A DNA stretch of 64,000 bases from NCBI GenBank assembly GCA_000708835.1, contig DF237453.1:4104-68103 (forward strand). Direction: 5' to 3'. The notes beneath the pieces are model-generated. The model made no database searches. It saw only the letters and a program-made list of their open reading frames with translations, and was not told the origin of the DNA. Below, piece after piece: positions 42,102-64,000 of the stretch. This DNA comes from Klebsormidium nitens (taxonomy: Eukaryota > Plantae > Klebsormidiophyceae). The translations under genes and the position numbers were made by a program. How positions within the stretch are numbered: position 1 is the stretch's first letter; each line of letters opens with the position of its first letter.

Positions 42102-45100
42102 ATGGCCGCTACCTTGCAATCCTTTGTTAGGACTGTCGAAGGGAAGACAAGGGTCCTGCGTATGGATCCGTCCGCCTCAATTAAAGAAGTACTAGTTGAA
42201 AGCGCAGTTGACTGGGGCCCTCTGGGAGACTTCCTTCTAGACAACGTTTACGTCACGCATCACGGGCGACGGTTAGACTCTTGTTCAACACTGGAGGAGT
42301 CAGAAGTGGGCAACCTGGACGTCCTGCAGCTAAGGGGTCGACTGAAGAGCACTTACTGTCCTCAAGCTCACAGTCTAGTGTATGAGTTTTGCTTCCTTGC
42401 TTGGCAGCTCCAGCATTCAGGACTTGGGGAAGTTGCCTTGCAAAACTACTTGGATGAATTCAAGAGCCTTAGCACAGCTTTGATGTGCTGCATCCAGGGC
42501 CGCGATCCAGTCAAGGCTGGTTATCTGGCCCGCCTGTTCCTTGCTACCGATTGTGTAAGGTACATCGTGACGATGCTTTTAGGACCTTCTGCAAACTCGT
42601 TCAGGTGAGCGTATGTAGTTTGATGCAGACAAAATAGCTCAGCTAGGGTTGCTGAGAGGATGTTTGCAACTTTTTGTTAGCTAGCTGCTATATAGCTTTG
42701 CAGCAGCTACCGTGTATTCTGTTCAGGGATGTGCCTGGAGAGCCTCCCTAATCTTCGTCTCACTACCTCTTTCCGTACAAGCACAGGGATTGCAGATCTT
42801 GGTTACAAGGTTTGGTCCATTTCCTCGTCTTCTCATCTATTCTGGATTGGTTTTGAGATACATCAGAGTACCCCCAGTAACAATCTTATCTTTCAAATTG
42901 CAGTACAAGGGCATCAGAACATTTCATCGTGCGCTTCGCCAAATACTGCAACCCGGATGCAAGGCCGTCCGGTCTCAAACACGTGGTGCAAATTTTCTGG
43001 AGTCTCCTTCGTGACCTATTCACCAGCCCTTTCTTGGAGGCTGCTCTTCCTCGAGTCCGTGCCTTCCTCCAACAAAGTCAGGAGATACTCTCAGCGGCCA
43101 TGAGCGTCGCACTCTGTGCAAAACAGCTGGACCTCCTTCTTCGAGATCCGACCATTAGAAAAGAATTTCGCCGCCCGGCAACTTTGTTCCTTGATCTAGC
43201 TCTATCAGTCCGGAAGCGCTCTCTGCAGTGGGTCTGGGAACTCCGGTCTCGTGGGTATGATCAGACGACAGAAAGAGAGTCCTGGCTGACAGGTGAATAC
43301 TTCACATCGGGTCTCAGTATCTGCTGCAAATATCTCAGGTCCCAAGCTGAATACAAGCGCAAAGTCGTCCGCATGGAGCTTCTGTCGAGCTTGCTCTTTG
43401 CCTCGCCCTCCTCCGGACCTACTGCGCAGATCCTGTACGGAAACCTCGAAGAGGCGATCAACGGAGTTCTTGATGAACTCGGAAAGCTGCCTCTTCCAAC
43501 TGATGCTCGAAAGCAAGGCACGCAGCTTGTCTCGGCTCTGCTCCAGGGACTGCGCACGATAGCCAATACGGATGCCAGTCTCAAAATTCGTTTCTCCGCT
43601 CTCCTCCGCGTCCGAATCTTCCCAATCGTATCTCTTGTGTTGGAAGAAATGAAGGATCTTGCGTCCTCTGGAGGATCGTCTCCCTGCTACCTGCGATGGT
43701 TCTGGTCCTTAGAAGAGAGCGCAGAGCTTCTTGACCCCAAATGGAAGCAGGAATGGATCCGCTACTGCTTCCGTAGCCGCGAAGAAGACAACGGTACCCA
43801 ACATGAGGTCGTCATCCAGAGAGGCACGAACCTGCTGACTCAAGCCGTCGAAAACTTAGGGTCCGCCTCCTGGAAGTCTCTCATGCGGCCGCTTGCTGTG
43901 ACCTTCGAGGGAGAAGAGGGGAAGGGGCCAGGTCTCTTACGGGAGTTCTTTACCCTGGTAAGACAAACCCTGACAACTTGCCAGTTCAGATCTACTATGA
44001 ATCACATCGGGTGAAAGAGAACTCTCGCAAAGTTTTAGGTTACAGGAATGAAGACACTCCCAAGAATGAAATGTGATTTTCCATAATAACGGAAGGATTG
44101 AGAGCGGGTGTAAATTCCATCTCTGTTGAACTTCAGGTTGCATACCTCTCTCTTGATTGGAAAAAGCAGGTTAACACAACAATGCATGCACGCTTTGCGA
44201 CTAATCCGCTTTTGGTGTTGCTCTGGAGTAGTTAGCGAAGTTCTGAACCTCTGAGGATCACCGTTGGGAAAGAGCAAGCATAGAAGGATTCCTGATACTA
44301 GCATGTCGCTTTCTGCCAGGTCACGCGGCAGCTCTTTGACCCTGCGTGTGCGCTGTTCGTCGCGACCGGTCCCGACAAGCGGTGCTTCTTTCTCAACCAC
44401 GCCTCTAGCATCAATCCCGGCCATCTAGCTTACTTTAGGTTCTGCGGCCGCTTTGTCGCACTCGCGCTGTCCGGGGGGGTCGTTTTGGGAGTTCGCTTCA
44501 CTTGCGGACTGTTTGATCTGCTCAAGAAGGCAGACGCAAGCTACGTTTGGAACATCGAAGCGGCTCTGAAGACAGCGGAGGATCTTGATCCGGTTCTATT
44601 TGACAGCTGCAAGAAGCTGCTGGCAATGAGTGCGCAAGAAGTAAGTTCGCACTTTCGAAAGTCCCGGTTCCTCCCTTCATTGAGTTCCTGTATGACATTT
44701 GAAGCAAATCAGGGGTAGTCGTATCTTGAATGGATGTATATTGGGTACAAGTACAAACTGAAAACATCTTCAAAATCCTCAAACAGCTTGATCTGCATCA
44801 AACGAGTTAGAAGATTCGTCGAAACGGAGGATAAGCAAGAAGTTTTTGCCCCATGTCTGCACCCTACTTTTCCTCTGCCATCTGACTTTTGCCCGCCTTC
44901 TACCATTTCAGCAGGGAAGAGAATCACAAGCTACCTTCTTTGCAACCACGCCTAACGGCTTTCCTACGTCTGAAAGTGATCAATCACCAACCTACAAGCG
45001 TTCTGCCTTCTCTACAGTTGAAGGAGGCCTCTTTACCGTTCGTGTGCACGGAACCCGACGGCTTCGGCGGATCCAATGAAACGCCCTTGATCCACACAGA

Positions 45101-45938
45101 TGGGGATCGTTTCGTAACGACAGCGAACCGGGAGTTCTTCGTTTGCGAAAAGATTCGGCGCCAGCTGCTAAAGCCCGTTATGAAACAAGCAGCAGCGCTC
45201 AAGGAGGGGCTCTCGTATCTGCTACGGCCCGGAATTGAGCTGTCCGAACTCCTCGGACCTTTGGGGCGGCAGGTACGGATCTTACGTCTTGCTGTTTCCG
45301 CTATGTCCAGTCCTCCCGTCTGTATCGGAGGCACAATGCACGTTTGGTACTGTTAGCAGATCTGATTCAGGAACCTAAGTTCCTCTGATAATCCTAATGC
45401 TGCTTCCTCAATCTAGAGCATTTTCGAAGGCTCACAATTCTCCTCTCCTTGTTTTCTTCGAGTACGGTTGAAGTCGTCTTGATCCGAATTTTGTATGACT
45501 AGTCTCTTTAACCAGCCGGGGCATTGACTATGGAATTCATTTCTCGTTCGGCTCCAGTACTTTGACCAACTGCTTCTCGGCCAACCGGAAGACCTCTCCA
45601 TCGTGGACTGGAAGGCCCACACAGTCTACCACGGCTACGGCGCCAAGTCAAAGGTCATCAAAAGGTTCTGGAAGGTCGTGGAGGGCCTCTCGGACGATCA
45701 GCGGCGACGCCTCCTCTTTTTCGCCACTGCTGTGAAGTCGCTCCCGCTCGCCGGTTTTGCCGGCTTACAGTCCCGATTTCACATCCACAAAGCCGATTGC
45801 GCGTTGAACAGGTTGCCCACCGCGCACACGTGCTTCTTTCAGCTTGTCCTTCCGGCGTACGATTCCTGGAAAGCTATGCGACGGAGTCTGCTGACTATCG
45901 CGCAGGAGGAGGTTTCGCAAGGTTACGGGATGATTTGA
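42102..45938 (+). CDS. UPL5: HECT E3 ubiquitin ligase with N-terminal ubiquitin-like domain (UPL5-type), 837 aa
   Basis: Exons 42102-42604, 42904-43957, 44320-44640, 45018-45272, 45558-45938, all GT-AG and in phase (2514 nt). UBL: LQSFVRTVEGKT...RRLDSCSTLEE...LQLRG. HECT: VTFEGEEGKGPGLLREFF, YFRFCGRFVALAL, RRLLFFAT, catalytic LPTAHTCFFQLVLP. Confidence 0.93.
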
Positions 45939-46521
45939 ATGCAGACGTCGCCTTTTGAAAGTTCGTCATAAAGAATTTGGACAAGATTCTCAAGGTTGGT
46001 CAAGTAAATAGCTTCCAGGATTGGCAGTCTGACTGGCTCTCTCCGCAAACTCTGCCGCGACTTTTCTTGAGAAATACGAACTGCCTTGCAATAATTGAAC
46101 TTACTTTTAAAGCCAATCCTGAGGGTTGCCATCTCGCTTAAAGGGTCGATTGGTTCCGACCCTAGCTAGCGCTCTCCCTGTCTTTTTAGTCCGTTCAATT
46201 CCATCCATGATTTTAGAACTATCACGTGACCCTACTTAGAACATGGCCCGCCGCGCTGGTCGTCAATGTCACTTGGGCCGGGACGCGCAGCTGTCCGTAG
46301 TGCATTTTTCGATTCAATACTCTACCATGCAGTGCACCATGCATGCATGAAAACCCCCGGATTCTGAAAGGGTCGATTGGAAACAGTACAATTATGCACA
46401 GTGCGTGTCAGACGTGTCTTTCTGGTGAGAAGATCCCTGTCGGACGTTCAAGCGACTGGTCTTACAGATCGAAGTGACTCTTTTGGTCGTCATTGTCATC
46501 ACAAAACAACCCCCCCTCAAC

Positions 46522-46858
46522 TTCCATATGGAATGCATACGAACTTCAAGCCGGTAGAATCTCGTACGAGCGCCGCATGGAAATTTCAATCGGCGTCCAT
46601 GTGAGTGCGGCATGGAGATCAGACATTCGGTTTCCATGCGGTTTCCGACCAAGAACTCGCTTGGAAACCGGACGAAACATTCATATGAACACCGATCGGG
46701 AATCCATATGGAAATCATGTTTGGAAACCATGCGGAAATTGTACGAGGGTGGCGCTTGTGAACATCATGCGGAATCGGTACAGAACTCGACTCCGGAAAC
46801 TGCGGCCTATTTACATGATATCCAAGCTTGTGGTTACCGTATGATATCCATGCGGAAT
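46522..46858. repeat. Cluster of CCAT(G/A)(C/T)GGAA-like motifs in both orientations
   Basis: Copies at about 46522, 46573 (reverse), 46632, 46704, 46728, 46766, 46848. Confidence 0.7.
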
Positions 46859-47043
46859 CTTATCTTAGGGCTGGATATTTGACCTGCCATCCATGGATAC
46901 GGGAAGGCCGCAAGCCTTTGGAAAATCGAACTGCTAGTGAGTAACATACCGAATGGGCTGCCAAGGCAGTACTTCAAATGACTGACACATAAATCTTGCA
47001 TGTCAAAGCCTTTGATATCCTCAACAACACGAAATACGAATAG

Positions 47044-48486
47044 CTAAAGAACGTTTTGTAGAGCTGAGCAGGTTGATGACGTCACTGTTGGCCTGCAGGC
47101 TTGATCTCCATGCTTGGTTGGTGGCCAAGCTTGAGCGGAGGTCTGCAGGTTGTAGAAGTTGTAGCAGGGCTCCAGAGCTTGGCTGTCCCGAATGAATGGG
47201 CCTGCGACAGGGGCAAGAGGAGTGAGAATCTGTAGGCTAGGCAACAATTGCTTAGGTCTTTCGAAGCTTGCGTACTTAGACTCCAAAAAATCTCGACGGC
47301 AGCGCTTTCGAAACGCACGCTTTCACCAAACATTTTGCACTTCAAGCGACTCCAATAAAAGCCGCAAAGACAAGCAGACGCGAAATGAAAATCTGTGCTT
47401 ATAATGGTCTACAGGTGCTCTACTTTCTCGGACCAAAGTGTTGCGAGTCCTAGCCAGGATACCCGAAATGACACTGATGAGGCCACCGAGATTGGTGCGA
47501 GTGCATGCTCCAGACAGCAAAGCAAGTGCGTGCAGCTTGTAAGTCTCCTGAGGTCCAGCAAAGTACCAAGCGTCAGACCCACCTGTGGTGTCCCCAGCGT
47601 TGGCCGCGTGCTGACTAGTAGATAACCGCGCGCAACCCGCCCCCAGGACCCAATGAGGCAAAAAGCGGCGAAGTCCGTCAGCGTCGCCCGCGCCTCCGCA
47701 CCGGTGCCTGCGCGCGCGCAGCCGCCGCTCCACAAACCCGGCTCCACCCCTGCCGTAAGCGTGCTTGTCTCGACCATGCCGCGGCTGCAGAAGCTCGTCC
47801 CTGCAATCAGGAGGTTACCATATTCATTCCGGTCACTATAATGTTAGAGAGGTGTGGGCTGTCACCCTCCGAAGATCGTCAATCTGTGTGCCCCACAGGC
47901 TGCGGAAACAACCACGGCGGAAACCCCACCAAAAGCGCCGGAAGAACTTGTGCTGGGCACCGTCTCACTCAACGTTTGTTTCGACTAGGTTTAGATTTAA
48001 CGGCTGGAAGGTTTGCGAATCGACATTTCCAAAACCTAGATATGATTTTTAAGAAGCTGGATTCATTTTCAAAGACCCACTGTCCGACTAGCTCACTCGC
48101 CAGCTTGCAAACAGATTGTCACTCATAAGCACAAAACCGCATCATAACTATCCCGCAGATGAAAATGACGACGCTGTCTCTAGCTTTGTGGCGGCTCGCG
48201 TAAGGAACAAACGAGCACTCAAAAGAAAGTCTTTCTGAAAGCGGCAATCTCGTCCGACTCAGAGCAATAAAAGGCAGTGACAAATCGTCGTCTACCCACG
48301 CAAATCCTCACCGCAGCAGCGTTGGTCATACAACAGTCTCGCGAACAAGATGGACGTCTGGTCGGTGACACGTGGCCCGCCCCGGAGCTCCTCCAGTAGC
48401 GCATCCACGTGGTGGAACACTTTCGTGAAGCTTGATGCCGAACTGGAAGAAGAAGGTCTTGCTCATGCTCTTGCAGTCGTCGAGAC
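47044..48486 (-). pseudogene. Decayed multi-exon gene, copy A (unknown family)
   Basis: Exon-like blocks 48486-48312 (frameshifted: GLDDCK...FQFGIKLH/KVFHHVDALLEELRGGPRVTDQTSILFARLLYDQRCC), 47800-47583 and 47201 onward, with splice sites conserved relative to copy B. Confidence 0.5.
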
Positions 48487-49049
48487 CTGCACAATCAACG
48501 ACTGTCCTTCAACGGTTGACACACACCCTAAAACCGGCTTAGAACTGGAAAGCTGCAGGAGGTAATTCGTCGCTTGGCTTATGACATAAATACCAGTCGG
48601 TTACAGAACGGCCGGGACAGCAAGTGAGTTCTCACAGGCATACCAGAAGAAGAGAAGGTGTTGAAGGGGGCGACAACCTGTCGAGATGAGGTGCCTGAAT
48701 GGGTGTACAAGTGATAGGCTGGGCGGGTGACCCCAAGGTTCAATCAGCGCGGTGGACATCTTAGAAGGAAACGTGAACTGGGCATCATCGCTGGAGAAGA
48801 AGTTTTGAAGGCAGGCATACAATCTACGGCAAAAAATGGAGAGGTCAACGCAGATCTCCGCGGTCCCGGATTCATTGTTATCAGGAGAACTTGCCGGGTA
48901 TACTAATCAGAATTAACTTGTCAGCACTTGGTTCTGTCGAGGACTTGTATAATGGACCAGAGGGGGTGCAAGCCCAAGTGGAAACCGATATCCCCAGGAT
49001 CCGGATCAGTTGATCGGATTCTTCAAATGGCTTGTCAACTTCCACTTCT

Positions 49050-51183
49050 CCGGGTTAGGTAGACGCTTTTCATGATGGATGTGAGCGATAATGAGCGGTC
49101 CCTCACCTCCGCATGCACTTACTGCTCGGAGTCGATGGTTGCTTGGTCTCAACACGCGAGCGGGCGGGCGAGCGGGCAGAAGGAGCGACACGTTGCATAC
49201 CTGCAGACACGGCACAAGAGGTTTGAGCTTGGTGTTCCCAAATTCGGGCTTCCCCGTTACAAGCAAGTAGAAAAGGAAGAGCGCTGTCATACAACTCCGG
49301 CTTGCAATTGAGACATGATGTCTGCAGAAAGATTGAGAAAAGTGTGACTCAACAGGCTCGGCGACGCCGACACGTTTGCATAACAGCGGACAAATTCCGA
49401 CAAAGTCAAAGAATCAAGGGCCTTGCCTTGACGAAAGCCTGAGCGGCTCTTGGGTTCTGCGGAACCAAGTCTCCTTCAAGCTCTCCGCGCATCGAGAGAA
49501 ACAAAGGCCGCACAAACACGCGTACGAAGGTGGAACCTATCTTCCTTGTGCTCTACTTTTCATTGAGCTACAGTAACGGTTGTTCTAAGTCTCGACTAAC
49601 GAAGTCAGGGAAGTCTACTGTGAAAGGTTGGGGGCACCATCGAAACTCCGAAGCGAATAGAAGCGTTGCTAACCACTTCTTCGCCCGCCCCAGCCTGTCC
49701 GAACGTTCAAAAGGTGAGCACGGCCAGTGCGGCTTTCACCAGACGTCCAGCCAAGTGCCACGTGTCGACCCACCTGTCGTCTTCTCGCGTGGCCCTCTAG
49801 CTGGCCCGTGCTGGCTAGTAGGTGGGCAAGGGCAACCCGCCTTCAGGACCCAGAGCGGCGAAGGGCAGCGAAAATCAGCAGCGTTGCCGCGCTCCCCCAC
49901 CGTTGCCTACGCGCGCAGCCGCACCTTCCGCGCTGCCCCAAGCGGTTCAATGTCTCAGCTAGTATGCCGCCGCTGCGGAAGGTTGTTCCTGAAACACGAT
50001 TTAAGAGCATGAATGCCGATGACGATGATTAAAAGTAAGATGGACCGGAGGTGTCACGTTGGTAGTGACCAGTGGTGCTTCGTGGGTCCTAGGGACTGTG
50101 GAAGAATGGCAACGTGCCAACTTGAAGACCACTAAAAGCGCCAGTTGACTTTGCATGTCACTTGAATCAGGGAAACTCCCGTAACTTAGACAACGCTTTG
50201 CAGTCCCGGTTCAGCGGCTCAAGAATCGACCCAACTTTAAGTCCAAAGAAGGCTCGGTGTTAACGACCTTTTGAAGAGCCACTTTCCGTTTCCCATCACC
50301 AGCTTTGATGCAAACTGCTGACCGCAAAGCAATGTTTCGCGTTGACTTTCACCGAGGAGACAAAAGAAGCGTCTGCGACACGGTGCTAAGAGATAGGACC
50401 GAGGTGGAATTGCACAATGGAGCGGAACTGACCTGCGGATGATGAGCACGTCACTGGTCGCTACTCGCCGCATCAGCATCGTTTGAACGTCTTCTTCTAG
50501 TAGCCCTTGTCTGCATCTGAGAGAGAGGGCGGCATGTTCAGTTTTACAAACTTCATTTCAAACCGAGTGTTCAGGTTAACACCTTTTCGTGCAAGTTGGG
50601 CCATCGCACCGTTCGACCTCGTTTGTCCCTTCGATTCCGTCGGTCCGTAATCAGATTCAATACAGCAGGTACTGCAAATCTACGCAAAGCAGCCAGGGTA
50701 GTGCCTAGATACCCTCTTCACCCGCGGGGCCCGCCCGTGGTACCCTTGAATCCGGCTTTGCATGACGTTATATTCAATTATCCTCGTCTTACTCGGTTGA
50801 GCCACGAAACGGATAGGCACGCGACATCTCCGTTGATTTCGTTGGACAACGTAGCCTGAAGGTTTAGAGACGATATCAGGCAGAAGAAGACAGACAAACA
50901 GGCGGAGCTCTTTTCAAAACTCGACCCTCATCCCGTCTTATCCAATACAGCAGAGTCTAAATTTTGATAAAGGTGTGTCCGACTGCCAGAGCGGCCTCAC
51001 CGCAATCGAGTTGGTCGCAGAGCAGCCTGAGAAGCGAGATGGACCTCTGGGAGTCGACGACACCCGGCCCGCCCCAGCGCCTCCCCAGGAGCGCATACGC
51101 GAACGTCGGCGTGGTAGAAGATGCGGTGCAGCTTGATGTCAAACGGAGGAAGGAGACTCCGCTTCGGTGCAGTCGTGGACAGC
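49050..51183 (-). pseudogene. Decayed multi-exon gene, copy B (paralog of copy A)
   Basis: Blocks 51183-51001 (FDIKLHRIFYHAD/ALLGRRWGGPGVVDSQRSISLLRLLCDQLDC, frameshifts), 49988-49774 (TGA where copy A has TGG) and 49200 onward; same gtgagg and gtgggtc donors as copy A. Left end approximate. Confidence 0.5.
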
Positions 51184-52707
51184 CTGCGGAACACACAGCT
51201 CTTATTGATCGCACGACATGAACGACCTGGTAATTTCAAAAAGGACTCGCAGTCAACCGGTCGCTTGAATGGGCAACACAAGGCGAACAGTCTGGAACAA
51301 AATTGCGGGACAGTGCAAACTAGTGTACCGAAACGACAGCCGAAGGGAGAAGCGTGTTAAGAGGTGGGAAATAACGCCGTGACGCCAGCTATGGTGGGCT
51401 CGTTTGATTGAGACACAAATGCCTTGAGTTCCAAGGAAGTTGGTGCGATATACAGGACAGCCTCGCAAGATGAAGGCAAGCACATCTAACGGGCGACCGG
51501 AATCGCTTGAAGCAGGCAGACCGTCCCCCGGTAGACGGTCTACCGGGGGATCAGAAGATAACGGACGCAATTCGAACCCAAGTGCTTCAGAAATTATTGC
51601 TGTCAAGGAGATCTACTCGGTCAAAAGGTCAACCGCGCATTCGACTGGCCTCCTGATTGATTCAGTCGTGCTCATGATGCAGAGAAGACGAGGGCATCAA
51701 GAAAGACCATGAGCGCTGCAAGTGCAAGTGAGTATACCGACATCCAGTGTCTCGAAATCAGCCAACCGGGTTCGTCAAACAGTTGCGGTCCTCTCCATCT
51801 TTCCAATCTAGGCGGGCGCTTTCAGTGATGCACGTGAGCGAACGCGAGAGGGCCCTAACCTGTGCCGACAGATGCCCGAACATGCTTCTTTGGTGAGGTC
51901 AACACTTGTTGGAGCAGGCAACACGCTGTACAGGTTCGCAACACGCGGTACATCTGCAGCAACGGGGTTTCAAGTTCGAAGTTTGTGTGGAGTTCAAGAA
52001 GGAAAGCGGATGGACTACACCGTCGTAGAAGTTCAGTCAAGGTTGGATTCGGGCTTGACCTACCGCCCTCGTGTCAAAAGCATTGGTCGCCAAGAACCAA
52101 GTTCGTACAGCAACTTGAAAAGAAGCACGTCAGCAGATTCTGACGTCCAAATCAAAACTCGACATCGGGACAATAGTTACCGGTCAGGAGTTTTTGGTAT
52201 CGGCTCTTACAAGCACACTTCTATTGAAGAGAGCGGCCGAGCAGTAAGAGCCGCAACACTCAAAACGATATGGTCACCGAGTGGTCAGGTATATACCTGG
52301 GGCTGGTGGCTGGTGGCTGGCGGCTGCCCGGGTTGAAAGATGACAACGATCTCAATATCTGCACAAAGGAGTGTTTTCGAGTGTGACCCACGGACTTGTC
52401 CTCCAGAAGTGACGGCACGAAAATACTCAAGTAAAGAAGTCCGTAGTAGCTGCGCCAGACCATGTAAAGGGGTTTCTGCTTTGGCAATCCCAAAGGAGCT
52501 CGAATCTTCACGGTCGACATGCGGAATCAGACAGGTGTATTTAAAGTAAACGCTTCCAGCAAGAACCGTCATGGAAGCAAAGGGATTTGACAATTTCCCG
52601 AAATCCAAAGTCTTCGGTAAACAATCACAATTCTGTTGCGCCTTCAAGGTGTCAGCCAATCGAGACAAATCCCGCTTGTCCAAGGTAGCTCTTAGGCGTA
52701 GACGGCC

Positions 52708-55700
52708 TCACCAAGACGTGTACTGGAAGAGGAACCGGTTGACGAAGAAGATCTCGGGCAGGTCGTTGCGCGGCACAACGTGCACGGCGCGGAGAACGTT
52801 GGCGGTGTCGACCAGCTTGAACTCGCCGCCGCGCGCCATGCCCTCCCACTTCAGTTGCACGCACTTGGTGAGCTTGTCGATGGCGGGCAGCTTCTTGTAG
52901 TAGCGCACCAGCGCCATCTCGTGGCGCCGCTGCTGCCCGGGCGCATGGCCCTCCACGGTGCAGCTCAGGAAGAGCCGCACCTGCGCGTGGAGGTCCCACG
53001 GGGCTTGTCCCTCGGCCTCTCCTTGGAGCGCGATGTTGCTGTACCAGGGCCGTCCGTGGAAGCTCGGAACGGCCCTGGCGCACATAGGGCGGGGGCCGAA
53101 GCGGTCGCTGTCGCCGGTCGGCAGGGCGAGGGCGCTGTGCACAGTTACCTGCGGGGAATATTGAAAAGCTTTTGCATTAGGGTCGCGCATAGTCTGATAG
53201 ACGCCCGTAAGAGAATCAGCTGCCGCAACTGGAAAACATAACTGGAAAACATAATTCGCTATTATGCTGCTAGCACCGAATCAGAGTTCCCTGATCCACC
53301 CACGAAAGCCCAGGCGTTCGACCCAAAGTGCAATGCGCAGCTTTTTCAGATCTGAACGTTGCATATCAGCGAAGGAGCAAGAGGGGAAACGCTAACAAGC
53401 TTGTGTAAGATTCCAAGGATGCATCAGAAAAGGCTTGTCGAAGTTGAAAATGACCCACCACGCGCTTTGCAATCCGGTCGTAGTCCTTGCCCAGAAACTT
53501 GCGGAGTTGTGTAGCGAGGTGTCTCAGCTCGGGTTGCTGATTTAGCAGCTCGCGCGCGTGTTTGGATGAAGAAGGCCCGTCAGCTGGATCCGAGCTCGGG
53601 TTACTGATGTGCTCCAGCCACGGGAGCCTCAGGTTGAGCTTGACGGAGGACAGCACGTTCCGGCGGGGGTCGCTTGTCATCGCCTGTCAAAAGAAAAAAG
53701 AATCGCAGGATGATCCGCTCGGTAATTCCTGGATCACAGAAAAGCTCTCGCCTTGACTTTCGAGGCACTAGGGTTTAACTCGGTTCCAACCAAAGCAGTT
53801 GTCAATATCGTTTAAACTTCGGGCAAGTGGCGACATCTCCCAAGGACGAGATGCAGCTGCTCAGACTTTCAAATGATTGCAACGACAACGAGATGCAAAC
53901 GCTCGGACTTGCAAATCACTGCATCGACAACGTCACACCTGCCAAGGTACATTTTTCAAGCACTCTGCGATGAGCGGACAGGCAGGCTTGCAGATCATCT
54001 CGGACCTCTAAGTGGAATCATCCTCGAAACCTTTCAACAGCTTCGATTCCAGTCTTACCCGTTGAAGAGCCGTCCTTGCATTGTCCTCGGTGCGCTGCTC
54101 CTCGTCCTCCTGGTCCTCCTCGTCGGCATTTGGCAGGCCGGCTGCTTTTCGCAGTTGGCAGAGTCGTCGATGATGTTTGAGGACCTGTGAAGACGGTTTA
54201 CAAGTGCTCAAGCGCAGGCAAAACTCGGATAATGGATTGCATCCCGGGGAGTCCTGGTACAAAGCATTTCCAAAGTGGACAACACAACGATGTCTCACAA
54301 TCGATGCCAAGCTGCAAGAGAACGTCAAGCTAGAGGCCGGCAGCTCTGTCCGACCGCGACGCTACTTGAGAATGTGCAAGTCAGCCAAACTCCAGGGCTT
54401 TAAAGAGTAGATTCGACCGCAAGGTTTTCTTTTGCCACGCTCTCTAGAGCAAAGAGAACGAAGTCGGCTGAGCTTAGACGAGCTCGTCACCTCTCGCTTC
54501 ACCAGAATTCAGAATCCTCTTACAGTTCAAACACTTCAAGCCCCGATTAGAAAGCCATGGGCACCACCGCTCACCTGGTCCATCGCGTTCCTCCGATTAC
54601 TGGCTCTGTAGCCAATTTTGAGCAGCTGTATGTCGAGCGACTCGAACAGATTTGTTGAGTAGTGAATGGGCACTCCGGAACGCCATATGCAGTCCCGGTA
54701 GTGCGAAACCAGGTGGATTTTGATGATTCGGAACTCGGAGGCTTGCCCCTCGCCGAGCGTACGAATGATCGCCTTCACAGCCCTGCACAACAAGGACACT
54801 TCAGTCCCCGAGTCCGACTGACCAACTTCATAAACTTGAGGTTGTACACGACGTCGCTAGCTGTCTAGTAGACCAAAACTTTCTATACTCCGTGACCGAG
54901 AGCTGGAGATGTGTTGAAAAATGTTCGAACCTAACTAAGCAAGCTGATTGGAAACAAGGGCATGTCGAGACTCGTGAAAGTAGTAGCTGAATGCAAGTGA
55001 CCAGAGGGCTCCTTCGGTCTTTCTTTCTGCAAGACAAGAGTCCGCAACCGTTCAACTTGCAAACCAGAAAGCGGCCCATGTAGTGAACAGTCAGTAGGAG
55101 ACTAATCTGTTAGTGACTAAATTTAGAAAAGGGTGACTTCCCGGATGATGCTTGAAGACTGACACGACTTCCGACCCCGAGCAGCTCATGAACCTGGTGA
55201 ATCTAAAGTCGGACTGATATGCTTTGCCTCACTTTTCGCCTTGTCGCTCCATCTGGGTCAGCGAAGCCTCCGTGTGTTCGTCCGTCCGGCAGGCAAGAAT
55301 CACCCAGTCCACGAACTCAACCAGCGCCGCAATGATGCTGTTGTCCACAAGGCCGACGAGAGCAGGGATGACCACCTGAAAGCGTACGGAGGTTGTGGTT
55401 CAGCAGCTGAATGAAGCTCGGGGCTGGCCTCAAAACGTAGGTCCTCATTTGAAAATAGACGCTGCTTTCAGAGGAGAGACACCGCAGCAAGGGCAAAGCA
55501 CAGGCTGCCATGTTGGTGACTTTGTAAATTGGAAAGTTCGCCTCCCGGATCGTCTTAGAGGAAGTGCGGATGGCTGGTTGCGATACAAGAAAGACGATTC
55601 AAAAAGCGAGGTATCATTCTTCTGAATAGCATACAAGCAGATCCGATCGTCTTACCTGCATCACCGCCCGATGTTCGAATGCTGCAAACTTGGATCTGCC

Positions 55701-58700
55701 CGAGCTAGTGAAGTACCCTCCTTTGTCAGATCCGGGCACACGCAGATCGGCGAACCTGAAGTGATGTCACGGGAATCAGGATTCCTGCTAGAGTCGCATT
55801 CACATTGAGAGCTCTTTGGCTGTCGAAGCAAGTGCCTCACAATCTGGACATCTACTATAAGCTGAGGAACTAAAATCTCGGGTTTGAATCTCCTTGGCTT
55901 TTCTAAGTAAGTCACATCAGACGGACTCCCTGACCAACATGTTACACGAATCGAGAAGTACATTTTGTGGTCAAAGACCAGGTGAACAAGTGCCAGAGTA
56001 CCATCTAAGCCAACCATTCCTACTGCTCTTCTGTAGTGCTCTGACTTCTCACCTGTAGTTCTCTTTAATGTCCATGAGCGCCTTCTCGATGGCGCGCGCA
56101 ATAGCCGTGCGGTGGGACCCCGCTGCCACGTTGAGTAGCGCGTCGCAGATGGTGGGGAACAACCCCAAGTCCGTCTGGTGCATCATGTCTACGTGCACCG
56201 CCCGGTAGGGGTTCCCCCAATCGGTGTCGCCCCCATTGAAGCCCCACAGAGCGCACTGCACATGGGTCGACAATCGCATTGGAACTGTTGTCAAAAAGGT
56301 GGTCTGCTCGAGTGACCTGGATGAATGTCCTCCAAAGTTGTGCTCTCAAGTTGTCAATCACGGGCTTGATCACGGGCTTGTTCTACCAAGGCTTTACTGC
56401 CGAGAAATTACACAAACACGCAAGAAAGGGGCTCTCAGCTACGGCAGGACATAGGAAGCTTGGAAGACTAATTCTTCTAAAAGGTCTCGTCCTCACCTCC
56501 ACGGGATGCAAAGACAGGCCCATCGACCACTGATCGCGCTTCACAGGGTCTATGTCCTTGTTGGTGATCTTGGCGTGAGCCGCCATCATGCCTTTCTGCG
56601 TCCGGAAATGGAAGTGCTTGTCCACCTCGCACAGACGAGAGGCGGGGCACATGCAGATGCTGCACGGGGCGTTCGTCTGGTTCGTGTCTTTCGTACACGT
56701 CACCTGTGGCATGAAGCAACGGGTTGGTGGTCAGATATTTCTGCTTCAGACCCTCTTCGCACGCAGAGTCTTCATTGCAACATCGCAAACGTTCTGCAAA
56801 CCTTCTGCGAGAACGCGGGCTGACATTTCAGTACCAAGCTTATTGAGAAGCAAGACCTTTGCTAACTTGTCAACAACTGTATTGCCTGAGAGGTGTACCA
56901 CATCCAGTTCTCAATTGTCTTGATGCCTGCTGCGCCTGCGAAAGGTTGGACTCACTTTGCATCCCTCAGGATGATCGCAGACGTAGGCAAACAACATCGG
57001 GTAAAACCACCTCTCCTCAGCGTCCGGATCCTCTGACATGAAGCCCCTGCACACACATCAGGTCAACCTTTCTGTTAGCAATTAAACCCTGAAGTTTAAA
57101 GCTACTTCTACTTGCTTCCGTTTCAAGTGAGGAGCTTGTACGCTGGATTGCAATCACTGCACTTTGGGTACAAAGCCTGTAGTAGCGAGCAAGAGATCAC
57201 ACAGGGAGAAGGTTGAATGCAAGGCAGCTATAACTCACGTAAAGCTCGCATCCTTGAGCGGTTGCAGAACAAGCCGCAAGCACTCCTGGAAGACCTCCAG
57301 CTTCCGTAAGGTGAGCTCAGCGGACCCAGGCTCAAAACCTGCAACCAATTCGAATATTCCAGAACTTAGCCCAATCCTGGCAAGCAACAATAAGGTCTGA
57401 CCTCAAGACTGAGTCACATGCCTGCTTCGAACCACCAATTTCGAACATGTCCGGCAGCCCCGCTTACAGCAATTTCGCAACTGCACGCAACCTTTTCAGA
57501 TCCCGGCCCGGATCTCGAGCAAGTACCTGGATGTCCCGGCACAGCGTGTAGGATGGGGAAGATAGCAACCAGTGCATGCCCCCCAGGTTCATTCCGACGG
57601 TGCGACGCAATGTTTGCGGATGTGAGGGCGAACGGCCAGCCCAGGACGCTCATGTCGTTGGAGAGCGTGGTGACGTCACTGTTCATAATCAGCGGAGCGA
57701 TGACCGCTCCAGCGTGGCCCGTTCTGTTGATGTATTCCTGCACGAGACACGCATCATGGTTTTGGACTTGCAGGAGCTCCTTGCAAAGCGAGCACTAAAG
57801 TGGCCATAATTGGAGACAATGCTGGCGACACTCTCCAATATCTCTTTCTGTAAGTTTAATCCAATTCCATCCAAAAATTTGCCAAGACTGCAGTGCCAAC
57901 GAGCTTATAAACTTCTGATTGGCGACTTCTAAAGTGGCACATAGGTCTCCCGCTCGGTTCCTTCGCAGGTGGCGCTGACCCAACCGGGGGGCAATATCCG
58001 AGGCGTTTCTTCCCCCCCGTTGAAGATGACTTAATCACAAAACCATTCGCAACCATGGCACAATCTTTAACCACTCAGGTCTCACCTGAGCCTGTTCCCA
58101 GAAAGTCGCCGTGTCGGGAGAACTGACTGTACGATTGCCCTTGCTGTCTTGCGGTCGATCAGCTAAGCCCGTCGAGTTTGCAGAGTTGGAGAGCATCTCC
58201 TTGAGCGCTTCCTCCGGGTCTCGCATTCGGAGAATGATTGGGTAAGGATCGCCCTCTTTGCTGAGGTCGATGCTCACCCATCCCTAAAAAGACAAGAAGA
58301 TGCTTCACTGAAAACTGAGTAACGCAATTGCTTCCCCTCACTTTCCACAGTACCAATTTCAATGAACATCTGCCAAGGTCCAAGCTGCCTTTTTCTATTA
58401 GATTCAGGGCCGCTGTCTGATCCAACTTGCACGTGCAATAATAAAAAATGGATAGTCTCAAGGACCTGTTGAACATCCTTGAACGACCTTCATTTTACCT
58501 AAGTTCAGAAGATGGTCTCAGCAGTTCCTGGCGCAATTCAAAGCAACGCTGACATCACAAACGCCAATTGAGAATCATGACCAACTTCGGGTCAGTTGGA
58601 CGCTATTTGCAGGGACTCCAGTCACAAAAGATATAAAAAACTGCTGCCATGAGATACACAAGAGTAATGATGCAGGGAACACCCTCAAAACCCTGCACTA

Positions 58701-59401
58701 CAACTTTCCTTACATCGTCATTGTGAAACCCTTCCCGACGCAACACTTACTAGTATTTCCACAGCCAGAAAGTTCAGCATTGTCAATTGTGCATGTTAAC
58801 ATAGTAAGACAGCCCTGGACGCCAATAGAAGTTGTTTACTCACATCACTTTCTTTGAAGAGCACGCGCTCCTCAAACTTCTTGAGCGCCGCCGGCGTGCG
58901 AGCCTTGACCTTGGAGGCGTCCAGGTCTTGGAAGAAGAGCAGATTCATAAGGCTTCTAGTGTCTTGTTCGCTGAGGCCGACATTGTTCCGGCACCGCCGC
59001 ACAAATTGTAGGATCTTCAGCGTCTCGCGGATCTCATCGTCTAGCTGAGGAAACCTGCTCTTCTCTGGATCCTCAACCGGATCTGAGAAAAATGAGCCGC
59101 CTGCGCTGTGTGCCTGATGCGCACCATGATCCTCAACAGAAGCGGCCCCCTGCCCCTCCCTCTCTTCCGGCAGCTCAACCCTTTGCCTTTTGCTGCCATG
59201 CGGCTCAGCTAGCGCTTGACTGGGGCCTGCTTCTTCCGCAATGCTCAGATCTCGCAGCAGCTCTTCTGCAGGTGCTGCTTTCGTGCTAGGACCTGCCTCA
59301 TGTCTCACCCACTGACCTGGGCACGCGAACGACTCCCTGTGGCTTCCCAAAGAAGCGGGGGTTGGAAACTCTCGCCCGCAGGCGGCACACTTGTGAGGCA
59401 T
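52708..59401 (-). CDS. Plavaka-type DDE transposase (CACTA/Mirage/Chapaev-related), 936 aa, with N-terminal C2H2-like zinc finger
   Basis: 13 phase-compatible exons: 59401-58844, 58283-58086, 57737-57527, 57338-57239, 57046-56956, 56703-56497, 56255-56053, 55755-55656, 55375-55233, 54782-54575, 54184-54059, 53683-53459, 53148-52708 (2811 nt, no internal stop seen). Motifs: HKCAACGREFPTPASLGSH; PLIMNSDVT; YPMLFAYVCDHPEG; PCSICMCP; VHVDMMHQTDLGLF; KIHLVSHYRDCIWRSG...YSTNLFES; C-terminal RAVPSFHGRPWYS...VLRAVHVVP. Confidence 0.88.
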
Positions 59402-60707
59402 TTCTCTTTGCACACACTCGGATCTTCTGAGGCTTGCAGGTAGACTGTATGCACTTCTTCAATCAGCCTGCAAGGATTTACTTGCTCCAGTGTGGAAAAT
59501 GTCCAGCGGGTTGATTCAGTTCTGCAGCGATGGAAGCAGCAGATGACCAGCGTCAGCTGCCCTGCATCTTGCGATGCGGATCTGACTCTTGGCGCAACCA
59601 CCTCTGATTTGCAAGAGCTTGCCTCCCTGGAACTTCCAGTGGAAAGCCACTTGAGGTTCCCTTAGACAAAGGGAGTGCTTGCATGCTGCTCTCCAAAAGT
59701 GGTCGGCTGACACTGTATTGGGCGGGCTTCCCAGGGAAATTCACTGCAATCCAACCCGGTAGAAGTGGCAGGGGGCAAGCTCCAGGCTCCCCTTCCCATT
59801 GGCACAGTGGGCACTTCCCCTCTTTCTAGCCTGGCTAGGGCAGCATTTATCCAAGAATTGAAGGATTTATGAAAAGTTGCCTTCTTGACCACAGAAACCG
59901 CTGATTCCACGCCTTCTCCACGCACGCAAACCCCCGAATTCACGCCTCCGATCCAGCTGTTTTACCATCCGAGTCCCCAAATTTTGCGCTGCTATCACGT
60001 GTAAAAACAGCCGCATTTGCCAGTGCCACTGAAATTGAAACCCTTAAACGGTCTCAACTGAACAACTGTTGCCAGATTGCTTTCTTGGCATCTCTTGCAT
60101 ACAGGTACGGTAGTTGTGCTGCACGCGACTGCCAGCCTGCAACTCTCAAGACCATGATTGACTCAAGAGTCAAGTGCTGCACAGCCAGGCAGCCTCCATG
60201 TGCAGGCAGCCTCGTTGCTGGTCAACCTTTCGAAAGCGTGAGCTCTTGGTTGGCGAATGGAGGGCCTTTGCGTGCATCTTCTGCATCTCTCTGCCTGCAG
60301 CCTACAGCAAAAGCTAAAAAGACGGATGCTAATTTGCATAGAGCTGGATTTCTCTCATTTTGGAAGAAAATATGTGCAATGCTGAACTTGTGAAAGTCAG
60401 AGTGACCGGGCCAAGCTTGGGTTTGCATGGGCTCTGCAGACGCTAGCAAGGCCAAGGATTTTTTCCTGCATCAGGCCTCAAACAGCATAGGAGGCTGCGT
60501 GTCTTAGCGAACATTGCTCATCTCCTCATAAGCAGGTCCCAAGAATCTATAGAAGCACCTCTTGCCAGCATGCCATTTTTCTCGCAGCTGCAGGCTGCAA
60601 GCAAAGGCTTAGAGAGCAAAGGTGGTGGGGCTCTAAATGGCAAGGATCATCAGTGGAGCTTGGGGGACAGGTTGGCAGGGATTGCAAAGATGCAGAAGAA
60701 GCTCAAG

Positions 60708-63700
60708 ATGGCTCCGCGACGAGCTAGGGTCGTCGATGATGAGACGTCTTCAAAAGATGATCCTCCCAGCAAACGGACAAGGTCTCATAATCCAGCTCCC
60801 TCATATGCCAGGTCAACCAATGGAGGGGATGCCGATCCAACAAGAAACGAGGAGAATATGGATCCGAGAAGAGCGGCAGCGAGCAATGATATTACTGCGC
60901 AGATACGCAACATGCAGGCACCGCTGTCCCCAAGAAATGCCAATGCACAAGGTCAAGCCGCTCGTAAAAAGAAGACCGCAGGAGTTCCAATGACAGAAGC
61001 AATGGGGGTTGCAAGTCGTGCAGATCAGGGTGAGCATTCTGTTTGCCCCTTTGCATGAGGTCCATTATCAAGCCTGGGTTCTCAGCGAAAGGTCTACAGG
61101 GAAATAGAGTTTCCAGTAGCGATGGAAGTCCGCTTTCAATTTGATGCATTGTGGCAGGGTACATTATTGAGATCTGTCCTGCAAATAAAAATGGTGCCTG
61201 TAGAAAGAGCATTGTTGAACCAACCTTTACATTTCTGCAGAGATATAGCGCAATCTGGTCATGTGACTCATTTTGAGACACATTGAATCTTGGCTAGGTC
61301 CAAACAGAAGCCAATTCGTAGATTGATGAAGGACAGGGTTGGCCATTTTCATTTAGTGAAAACCTTCTCAATTGAGCATATGTCTTTTACAGAGTAATTT
61401 CATTCAGCTTGGGTGTTGTCTCTCGTTAACACAGCAATCACATTAATCAACTTTTAACTCGTGGGGTTTTCCCAAGCATTGAGCTGCGAGTGTAGCTGCA
61501 AGTTTGAGATCAGAAGCAAAGATGTCCGACTTTAGAATGGCATTGTTGCTGGGTCACTTGATGAGTAGAGGGTGGTCAAAAAAACTTCAGCAGAGCATCA
61601 TGTTCTATCAGATCTTTTGAATACTGTCAGGTCCATCTATGTATGCGTGCCAGGGAAAAGAATCTCCATTTGCCTTCACTCTGGTCACAGTCTGAGCAGC
61701 GAAGCTGTCAGTACAGAAGAAAGAATGTAACTAGTGTTTGCTTTTTCTTCTCAGATCAAACACTCAATGCGACTCAGATGGTCAAATTTGAGAGGGCAAA
61801 GGCAAAGGTCAAGGAGTGCAAGGCCAAAATTGGGACCCTAGAGAAGGAAAACAAGGATCTGCGCGTCGTGAACTTGTCCCTGGAAAAGAGCTTGGCGGCC
61901 ATGAGAGATCGGTATGAGCTGCCGGACTACCTGAAACCAGAGCACCTAAAGGTAGGTAGATCCATATAATTGCACCTTCATATTTTTTTCCAAGGCTCAA
62001 AAGCCTGTATTAATGAAGGATGACACTAATTTTTGATAATCCTAGAATTGAAGGTCATCGGCTCAGTCACGGTGGTCGCAGCCACAGTGTCATAGGTGTG
62101 CAACAGAACTTCTTGGTTATGCAGCGCACGCCTGGTTCTTGCTGCCAGTGTAAATGCGTGACTGGCTCCATCCTGGAGCGTTTCTGTTTCATATCATCAA
62201 GCTTAGGGGTTTAAAGATANNNNNNNNNNNNNNNNNNNNNNNNNNNNNNNNNNNNNNNNNNNNNNNNNNNNNNNNNNNNNNNNNNNNNNNNNNNNNNNNN
62301 NNNNNNNNNNNNNNNNNNNNNNNNNNNNNNNNNNNNNNNNNNNNNNNNNNNNNNNNNNNNNNNNNNNNNNNNNNNNNNNNNNNNNNNNNNNNNNNNNNNN
62401 NNNNNNNNNNNNNNNNNNNNNNNNNNNNNNNNNNNNNNNNNNNNNNNNNNNNNNNNNNNNNNNNNNNNNNNNNNNNNNNNNNNNNNNNNNNNNNNNNNNN
62501 NNNNNNNNNNNNNNNNNNNNNNNNNNNNNNNNNNNNNNNNNNNNNNNNNNNNNNNNNNNNNNNNNNNNNNNNNNNNNNNNNNNNNNNNNNNNNNNNNNNN
62601 NNNNNNNNNNNNNNNNNNNNNNNNNNNNNNNNNNNNNNNNNNNNNNNNNNNNNNNNNNNNNNNNNNNNNNNNNNNNNNNNNNNNNNNNNNNNNNNNNNNN
62701 NNNNNNNTCATCAAGCTTAGGGGTTTAAAGATATCTTGTCCCACCAACGGGGCGAGGGGGTTACATTCCTTTGCTTATTATCATGGAGAGGCCTGCTCAT
62801 TTTCATACCTTCAGACATTTGTCCTGCTACAAAGGGCAGACCTTGTTGTTGTAGCTCGCCCTTCGCTCATCCTTCATTCTGATTGTCACCTGAGTCGCAA
62901 GTGAAGTTGACCCCTAACATTTTTCTTGTTGTGTTTTGGTTGCAGAAGATTGCCAAGCGCGTCATCTCCGCATTTCTGCGTGGCGACCAGTTCTACAGTG
63001 ACCTGTATCCAACCATGGACAACGTATACAAGGTCTTCCTCGCCGAGCAGGACCTGGCCCACAGCAGTGACCGCAGGAGGTTCAAGGACTACTGGGACAG
63101 CAAGTACGGGCAAAAAGTGATGACTAAGCTTGGGGACCGGCGCTCCAAGTTGGGGGGCAGGTTTCGTAAGCTGCTTGGCGAGGAGGTCAAGTGCGTGCCC
63201 ATGCCTCAGTTTCCAGACGACGAGGAGGAAGCAGCGGCGAGACAAGCCATTCGGGACAAGTTTGCTTCAGGTAACTTCCTCTCTTGAAGTCAAGGAAACA
63301 ATCACCTGTCAAATATTAGGGTAATCTTCCATGCGAACGCGTTTGTCACCCTTGCTGAGTGAGAAAATGGATTGCACCGAAGTCATCTTTCCCAGGTCAG
63401 CTTGTCATCTGAAGAATGCTTTACTTCGTGCTGGCAATTGTGCTTTCGTCTGGGGCTGATCCTAAAATCTGTATATGGCAAACGTGTCCAGATCTCGCGA
63501 TTGAGAAGAGACCGATTAACATTCAAGCGGCGCTTTGATAAGTCTTGACGACATCCAAATAATCGCACGTCAACTCTTGAGACGTCTGATGCGGGCTACA
63601 GTCTGCGTCTCTTGGGAAGTCTGTGAGTGAGTGGTCAATGCGATACATCTTGCTGTCCTTAATCCTTTACCAAGAAGTCTGGATTTGCGGTGAATTCTCG

Positions 63701-64000
63701 GAAATGAATCACTGGCAGGAGATAGAAGCACTCGTGGAAGGTTCATGAGACCTTGTGTTGAGGTGCTTCTTATCTGAAACAACCAATAATTGAATATTAC
63801 ACTATACTACAACAGCAAACTCATCAAAACCCTCGAGTTTTTCCTTATAATGCAGATAAGATTTGGATCGCGGGGCCCAATGCATTCCAGAATACGGAAA
63901 ACGGGGAGATTGCGTACGAGGAGAGCGAGGGGGACGAGCCGGAACCTCTGAAAGGACGTGTTTTTCGGGTTGCATATGCCGGCACGATTGAAGCGGCGCT
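60708..64000 (+). CDS. Unknown protein with basic N-terminus, coiled coil and helical domain; 3'-truncated by the window edge
   Basis: Phase-compatible exons 60708 (or 60570)-61029, 61755-61951 (KFERAKAKVKECKAKIGTLEKENKDL heptads), 62946-63270 (KIAKRVISAFLRGDQFYSDLYP...), 63856 to the end (DKIWIAGPNAFQ...). The N gap lies inside intron 2 and could hide an exon. Confidence 0.7.
62220..62706. other. Assembly gap (N run)
   Basis: Run of N; the same 26-mer tcatcaagcttaggggtttaaagata occurs on both sides. Confidence 0.98.

Follow-up and report, generated by a model that had tools for sequence, protein, structure and literature searches.

We have analysed a stretch of 64,000 nucleotides from the streptophyte alga Klebsormidium nitens (GenBank assembly GCA_000708835.1, contig DF237453.1, positions 4,104 to 68,103 of the forward strand), which as a whole is called the window here; all positions below are counted from its first nucleotide. 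On the minus strand, between positions 59401 and 52708, the window carries a gene for a DDE transposase of the Plavaka/CMC type, which judged by its sequence is apparently intact in frame and stands in a streptophyte setting. Thirteen exons (59401..52708) are joined via 12 GT..AG introns into 2811 nt, corresponding to 936 codons and a TGA stop codon. Both strands of the region were inspected, and exon borders were set by scanning every frame-keeping GT/AG pair in combination with homology. A stop-codon walk of the 13 joined exons found no internal stop in the spliced frame, and retention of any one of the 12 introns adds between one and nine stops. The introns end in CAG in 11 cases and in TAG in the remaining one. 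Base composition follows the same borders: GC content is 0.54–0.67 in the exons, with GC at third codon positions (GC3) of 0.61–0.90, and the introns are AT-richer (GC 0.43–0.51). The GC3 values of the transposase exons are comparable to those of the neighbouring HECT gene (0.59–0.74). An earlier, sequence-only reading of this DNA had proposed 13 in-phase exons with GT-AG borders and a 936-amino-acid frame, and the exon sum and the absence of internal stops bear this out. It had also held that the gene would be hidden from annotation based on open reading frames (ORFs), which agrees with the length of the longest single ORF piece, about 200 amino acids.

Family and homology searches were done with each exon singly (Pfam, blastp). 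The Calypogeia fissa protein CAM6089392.1 (P0031, 840 amino acids) is colinear with exons 1, 3–10 and 13 in blastp and serves below as the reference. Exon 1 (58844..59401, 186 amino acids; minus strand, as all exons) contains the ATG start, a C2HC/C2H2-like finger, an acidic linker and a conserved helical segment, and its residues 105–184 align with P0031 74–156 (E = 3e-10). Exon 2 (58086..58283, 66 amino acids) covers the pre-catalytic region; its match on the Closterium protein P0050 (212–280, E = 8e-6) directly follows the exon 1 homology, and P0078 and P0068 are matched as well. The first catalytic Asp (LIMNSD) is encoded by exon 3 (57527..57737), which is 49% identical to P0031 230–282. 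Exon 4 (57239..57338; P0031 295–318, P0050 339–366) corresponds to the helix that follows beta-3 in the RNase H-like core, and exon 5 (56956..57046; 53% identity to P0031 320–349) encodes the second catalytic Asp (YVCDHPE). Directly after exon 5, exon 6 (56497..56703; P0031 350–417) carries the C(2)C motif of the insertion domain (PCSIC), followed by the H(4)H motif (HVDMMH) in exon 7 (56053..56255; 41% identity to P0031 420–487, E = 8e-16). Exons 8 (55656..55755; 50% identity to P0031 489–520) and 9 (55233..55375; P0031 521–563) lead to exon 10 (54575..54782; 48% identity to P0031 569–632, E = 2e-17) with the catalytic Glu (YSTNLFES). Exon 11 (54059..54184, 42 amino acids) is an acidic low-complexity linker with an open frame and consensus splice sites; it has no significant homology to the relatives in blastp, and its length matches the gap between P0031 632 and 678. 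Exon 12 (53459..53683, 75 amino acids) forms the linker before the tail and aligns with residues 30–75 of K. nitens GAQ81132.1 (P0004), being weakly colinear with P0031 678–734. The junction to the last exon is continuous in GAQ81132.1 (DYDNIKKVV-VTVHTAL in the window, DYDRIAKRV-VTVHSAL in the relative). Exon 13 (52708..53148, 146 amino acids and TGA) encodes a conserved C-terminal all-beta, BAH-like domain, recognised by phmmer, AlphaFold2 and structural matches, with P0031 736–839 as its counterpart.

The P0031 segments matched by successive exons from exon 4 to exon 10 thus follow each other almost without gaps. Because exon-by-exon homology is nearly seamless, the gene model as read from the sequence appears correct to within a few residues at all junctions. 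In total, 12 of the 13 exons are colinear, at 29–53% identity, with full-length streptophyte Plavaka proteins of Calypogeia, Closterium and Klebsormidium nitens, and therefore a frame arising by chance is ruled out.

Assignment to the Plavaka family, which had been claimed from the sequence alone, stands on the Pfam profile as well as on these relatives. The Plavaka profile PF18759 matches exon 3 (E = 8e-6, 25.7 bits, profile positions 106–158) and exon 5 (E = 0.006, 16.3 bits, profile positions 204–230), and the two matches are colinear. Relatives that align to 12 of the 13 exons score 66–128 bits with the same profile. Exon 1 gives weak C2H2 zinc-finger matches only (zf-C2H2_6, E = 0.006), and no Pfam family was found on exons other than 1, 3 and 5. 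None of the retrieved proteins exceeds 57% identity to the window protein, with the exception of a 43-amino-acid fragment at 95% identity from ENA data.

The residues expected of a DDE transposase are present in conserved columns: the Asp of LIMNSD in exon 3, the Asp of YVCDHPE in exon 5 and the Glu of NLFES in exon 10. Conservation of the catalytic columns was judged over all relatives from Calypogeia and Closterium that extend across the column, and the first Asp column is invariant in the aligned relatives. CSIC in exon 6 is a C(2)C motif whose CxxC is kept in the relatives, and HVDMMH in exon 7 is an H(4)H motif; C(2)C and H(3–4)H motifs are common to Plavaka, EnSpm, Transib and RAG1 (Kojima, PMC12730594). 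In exon 1 the N-terminal finger has the form C-x2-C-x12-H-x5-C, and the relatives also begin with a CxxC finger. The motifs listed in the sequence-only reading (zinc finger, IMNSD, YVCDHPE, DMMH, LFES) were all located, in exons 1, 3, 5, 7 and 10, with the DxxH belonging to HVDMMH. A full-length AlphaFold2 model of P0031 was also made and set aside, as it was too poor for a fold search or for active-site geometry (predicted local distance difference test, pLDDT, 62.7; predicted template modelling score, pTM, 0.36).

Regarding the C-terminal tail, a phmmer search with exon 13 against 1.84 billion representative sequences returned 81 proteins. Among ten longer homologues that were scanned, six carry the Pfam Plavaka domain (up to 127.7 bits), with the tail domain at or near their C-terminus. 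Tail-bearing relatives come from the liverwort Calypogeia fissa, several Closterium species, Chara braunii and Klebsormidium nitens, and a profile search additionally recovered Sphagnum and a Marasmius fungus. In the Marasmius Plavaka protein the tail is faintly detectable (hhalign E = 2e-4). It is kept, at 25–39% identity, in four compact relatives from metagenomes, and look-alikes proposed by a language model are uncharacterised fungal fragments. The tail is a domain conserved from Klebsormidium to liverworts, and it occurred either C-terminally in Plavaka proteins or in short, fragmentary ORFs.

An AlphaFold2 model of exon 13, built from a 45-sequence alignment of the exon and its homologues, has 12 strands and no helix of four or more residues (pLDDT 93.8, pTM 0.86), so the beta-rich C-terminal domain seen in the sequence-only reading is reproduced by the model. 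In VIA-align, an independent all-against-all structure comparison, ranks 1–15 are taken by 15 different BAH domains (Z 10.4–7.0, 93–107 residues aligned, root-mean-square deviation 2.5–4.5 Å), including those of EBS, AIPP3, ORC1, Rsc2, DNMT1, TNRC18, MET1, ZMET2, ASI1, PBRM1 and ASH1L; Tudor, PWWP and chromo barrels come after them with Z of 5–7. Foldseek against PDB also lists BAH domains first with a probability of about 1.0, yet the E values are weak (0.03–0.3). Compared with the BAH domains of EBS/SHL, AIPP3, ORC1, DNMT1/MET1, CMT/ZMET2, Rsc2 and TNRC18, exon 13 superposes in fold but lacks a match at the sequence level: neither exon 13 nor any of the 45 tail homologues gave a Pfam match to BAH (PF01426), and a search of PDB sequences with the exon 13 profile found nothing relevant. 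On the basis of the model it is likely that the tail has a BAH-like fold.

If the fold is that of a BAH domain, the tail might dock on nucleosomes or histone marks, a step beyond the model that is plausible but, in our view, less likely than not. Equally tentative is the analogy that follows from it, namely that the Plavaka tail could read nucleosomes or histone marks in the manner of a BAH domain and thereby steer integration to a particular chromatin state, comparable to the chromodomains of chromoviral integrases. Binding of marked nucleosomes by the tail would provide a simple mechanism of target choice for a whole superfamily of DNA transposons. In streptophyte algae, where histone-fold genes also occur within some Plavaka gene models (Chara GBG85192.1), the tail may belong to a transposon-borne chromatin toolkit. 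To our knowledge, BAH domains are unknown as parts of DNA transposases, and a text search of the literature turned up no published case. Of the leads obtained here, only the BAH-like tail may be new.

Two side observations were made among the tail homologues. The Chara braunii protein GBG85192.1 (P0066, 2125 amino acids) contains a core histone fold (439–557), a Plavaka domain (983–1310) and the BAH-like tail (1611–1729); the annotation has probably fused a histone gene with the Plavaka transposase next to which it is carried. Four further long predicted proteins (P0003, P0022, P0051 and P0058; one of 2337 amino acids from an ENA contig) each match the middle of the tail partially 6–18 times in tandem, as if tandem arrays of Plavaka tail fragments had been translated.

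Taken together, we consider it probable that the gene is the transposase gene of a resident Plavaka element which is active or was so until recently. Such an element would be a cut-and-paste DNA transposon of the Plavaka lineage (CACTA/EnSpm-Mirage-Chapaev-Transib clade) resident in Klebsormidium. The N-terminal zinc finger and the helical region would recognise the element ends, the RNase H-like core (Asp in exon 3, Asp in exon 5, Glu in exon 10) would cut and rejoin DNA, and the predicted BAH-like C-terminal domain may attach the enzyme to nucleosomes or to a partner protein. The transposase is presumably competent in catalysis, and the gene presumably still lies inside a mobile element.

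Several observations weigh against this reading. Scanned singly, neither exon 3 nor exon 5 reaches the curated Pfam cutoff (26.3 bits). Three residues downstream of the catalytic Glu the window protein has Asp (LFESLD), where all eight relative sequences with the ExxH motif have His; judged by sequence, such a change from ExxH to ExxD might impair activity. Element ends were sought as Plavaka/CMCT termini (5'-CA..TG-3', TGT..ACA or CATCA..TGATG) with a target-site duplication of 2–3 bp, and between 45940–52708 and 59402–64000 no convincing pair of terminal inverted repeats or target-site duplication was found. The best candidate pair has 16 of 20 matches without matching flanks, i.e. it is at background level. 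Termini of the kind known from Plavaka elements (TGT..ACA or CATCA..TGATG, 2–3 bp duplication) were thus not seen in these flanks. There is no second copy in the 64-kb window according to tblastn with each exon, and short inverted matches to exon 13 within the window were dismissed as chance. Apart from the 43-amino-acid fragment mentioned above, a near-identical protein is absent from the large protein collections. Two word-index searches are uninformative on copy number: one with exon 13 returned nothing at 80–255 amino acids, and one with a profile of the relatives and exon rows returned eight proteins, with the window's own product not among them.

Some of these points could also be read as signs of domestication, which the sequence-only reading had proposed as an alternative to a young branch. 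The gene would then be a Plavaka-derived host gene without its former element ends, maintained by selection, for example for chromatin-directed DNA binding through the tail and the finger. A 936-codon frame kept intact across 12 introns with host-like codon bias would suit such a gene, as would the missing inverted repeats and second copy in the window, the absence of a near-identical paralogue from protein collections and the Asp next to the catalytic Glu. Against this stand the DDE triad and both zinc motifs, all of which are retained, and the nearest relatives are paralogues at 45–57% identity, not orthologues. Nor do the missing ends speak clearly for a host gene, as the window ends 4.6 kb from the transposase gene, leaving one element end out of view, and the gene adjoins an assembly gap and non-genic DNA. 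Domestication therefore seems to us an unlikely explanation.

The sequence 3' of the gene has to be considered in the same connection. The nearest clear host gene on this side encodes a HECT-type ubiquitin ligase, of which the C-terminal exons lie at about 42929–45938 on the plus strand (last exon 45603–45938, Pfam HECT, E = 2e-30), and it is separated from the transposase by about 6.8 kb without a recognisable gene. This gene-free stretch holds two pairs of diverged direct repeats, 47544–47725 / 49736–49922 and 48306–48404 / 50995–51096, with 71% and 74% identity. The pairs are colinear with their copies about 2.2–2.7 kb apart, and are probably an old duplicated non-coding segment or a repeat remnant. 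A cargo gene at 47544–48404 and 49736–51096 was rejected because the similarity between the blocks extends over several frames that contain stops. Such diverged repeats, and DNA in the 3' flank that could not be assigned, would suit an immobile relic, in which the element is dead, its ends lost or rearranged or its enzyme crippled, and stops have not yet accumulated in the frame. The lack of ends in the window and the ExxD motif would be in line with this explanation as well. It is, however, difficult to reconcile with 936 codons and 24 splice sites that are all intact, which is improbable for any but a young copy if neither selection nor recent activity has preserved them, and with the sharp contrast in composition between exons and introns. 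We give the relic explanation a low probability and prefer a resident, active or recently active element.

Positions 60570..63270 of the plus strand, 5' of the transposase gene, are occupied by a divergent orphan gene of at least three exons with consistent phases (60570–61029, 61755–61951 and 62946–63270). It is arranged head-to-head with the transposase gene, with 1.17 kb between the start codons. No Pfam family was found in the orphan gene and only weak coiled-coil-like matches were obtained; no homologue of it lies next to the four metagenome Plavaka relatives. The orphan gene could belong to the element as an accessory gene. Inside the orphan gene there is an assembly gap (N run 62230–62707) with an identical 26-mer on each side (62194–62219 and 62708–62733), and the region 62194–62733 is a scaffolding artefact. 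Note that the apparent drop in GC content at the window end is due to this N run. Since the orphan gene, broken by the assembly gap, runs towards the end of the window, one element end could lie outside it, and the right end is probably beyond position 64000. Rfam and tRNA scans of the window were empty.

The closest comparison in land plants is with the TnpD proteins of CACTA/En-Spm elements, which are built along the same superfamily lines, with a transposase gene of several exons and a further gene in the element. They differ in sequence, as no plant CACTA Pfam family matches the exons of the window protein, and in gene structure: angiosperm CACTA transposases have 1–6 exons (n = 64; PMC4158355), whereas there are 13 here. 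Four contigs from JGI metagenomes (L001–L004) encode distant Plavaka relatives in which the homology to exons 3–13 is contained in 2.1 kb, compared to 5.0 kb in the window, so that they hold far less intron sequence. The view that the intron density is unusual for a mobile gene is thus supported by both comparisons, although such density probably characterises the host lineage. Most likely, the exon count is high because the element has long been resident in a host lineage rich in introns.

Plavaka transposases of fungi were reportedly described by Iyer et al. in 2014. The window protein shares with them the PF18759 matches in exons 3 and 5 and, weakly, the tail of the Marasmius protein, but it is only about 19–35% identical to the fungal protein; as a further difference, no TET/JBP accessory gene was seen. 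PlavakaA and PlavakaB have been treated by Kojima 2025 (PMC12730594).

Plavaka elements have been published from red algae, chlorophytes, streptophyte algae and moss (PMC13519894, the Spirogyra pratensis genome paper; bioRxiv 10.1101/2025.02.11.637652; 10.1101/2025.02.07.637104). According to these studies the algal elements are active or abundant and often large with accessory genes; in Bostrychia about one third of the genome consists of giant Plavaka elements that carry accessory genes (bioRxiv 10.1101/2025.02.11.637652), and Auxenochlorella has potentially active EnSpm-Plavaka families (10.1101/2025.02.07.637104). Our gene resembles them in lineage and host group, its closest full-length proteins being from Calypogeia, Sphagnum, Closterium, Chara and Klebsormidium nitens. 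Another resemblance is the non-transposase gene next to it, reminiscent of the accessory genes that algal elements carry, but this neighbour has no recognisable domain. A green-lineage Plavaka branch, as proposed from the sequence alone, is therefore supported with respect to its streptophyte context but is not new, because Plavaka elements of Archaeplastida have already been published. The gene in the window adds an intact Plavaka transposase to a lineage from which elements of this kind are known, and its chief value lies in annotation, since ORF-based pipelines miss a transposase of 13 exons.

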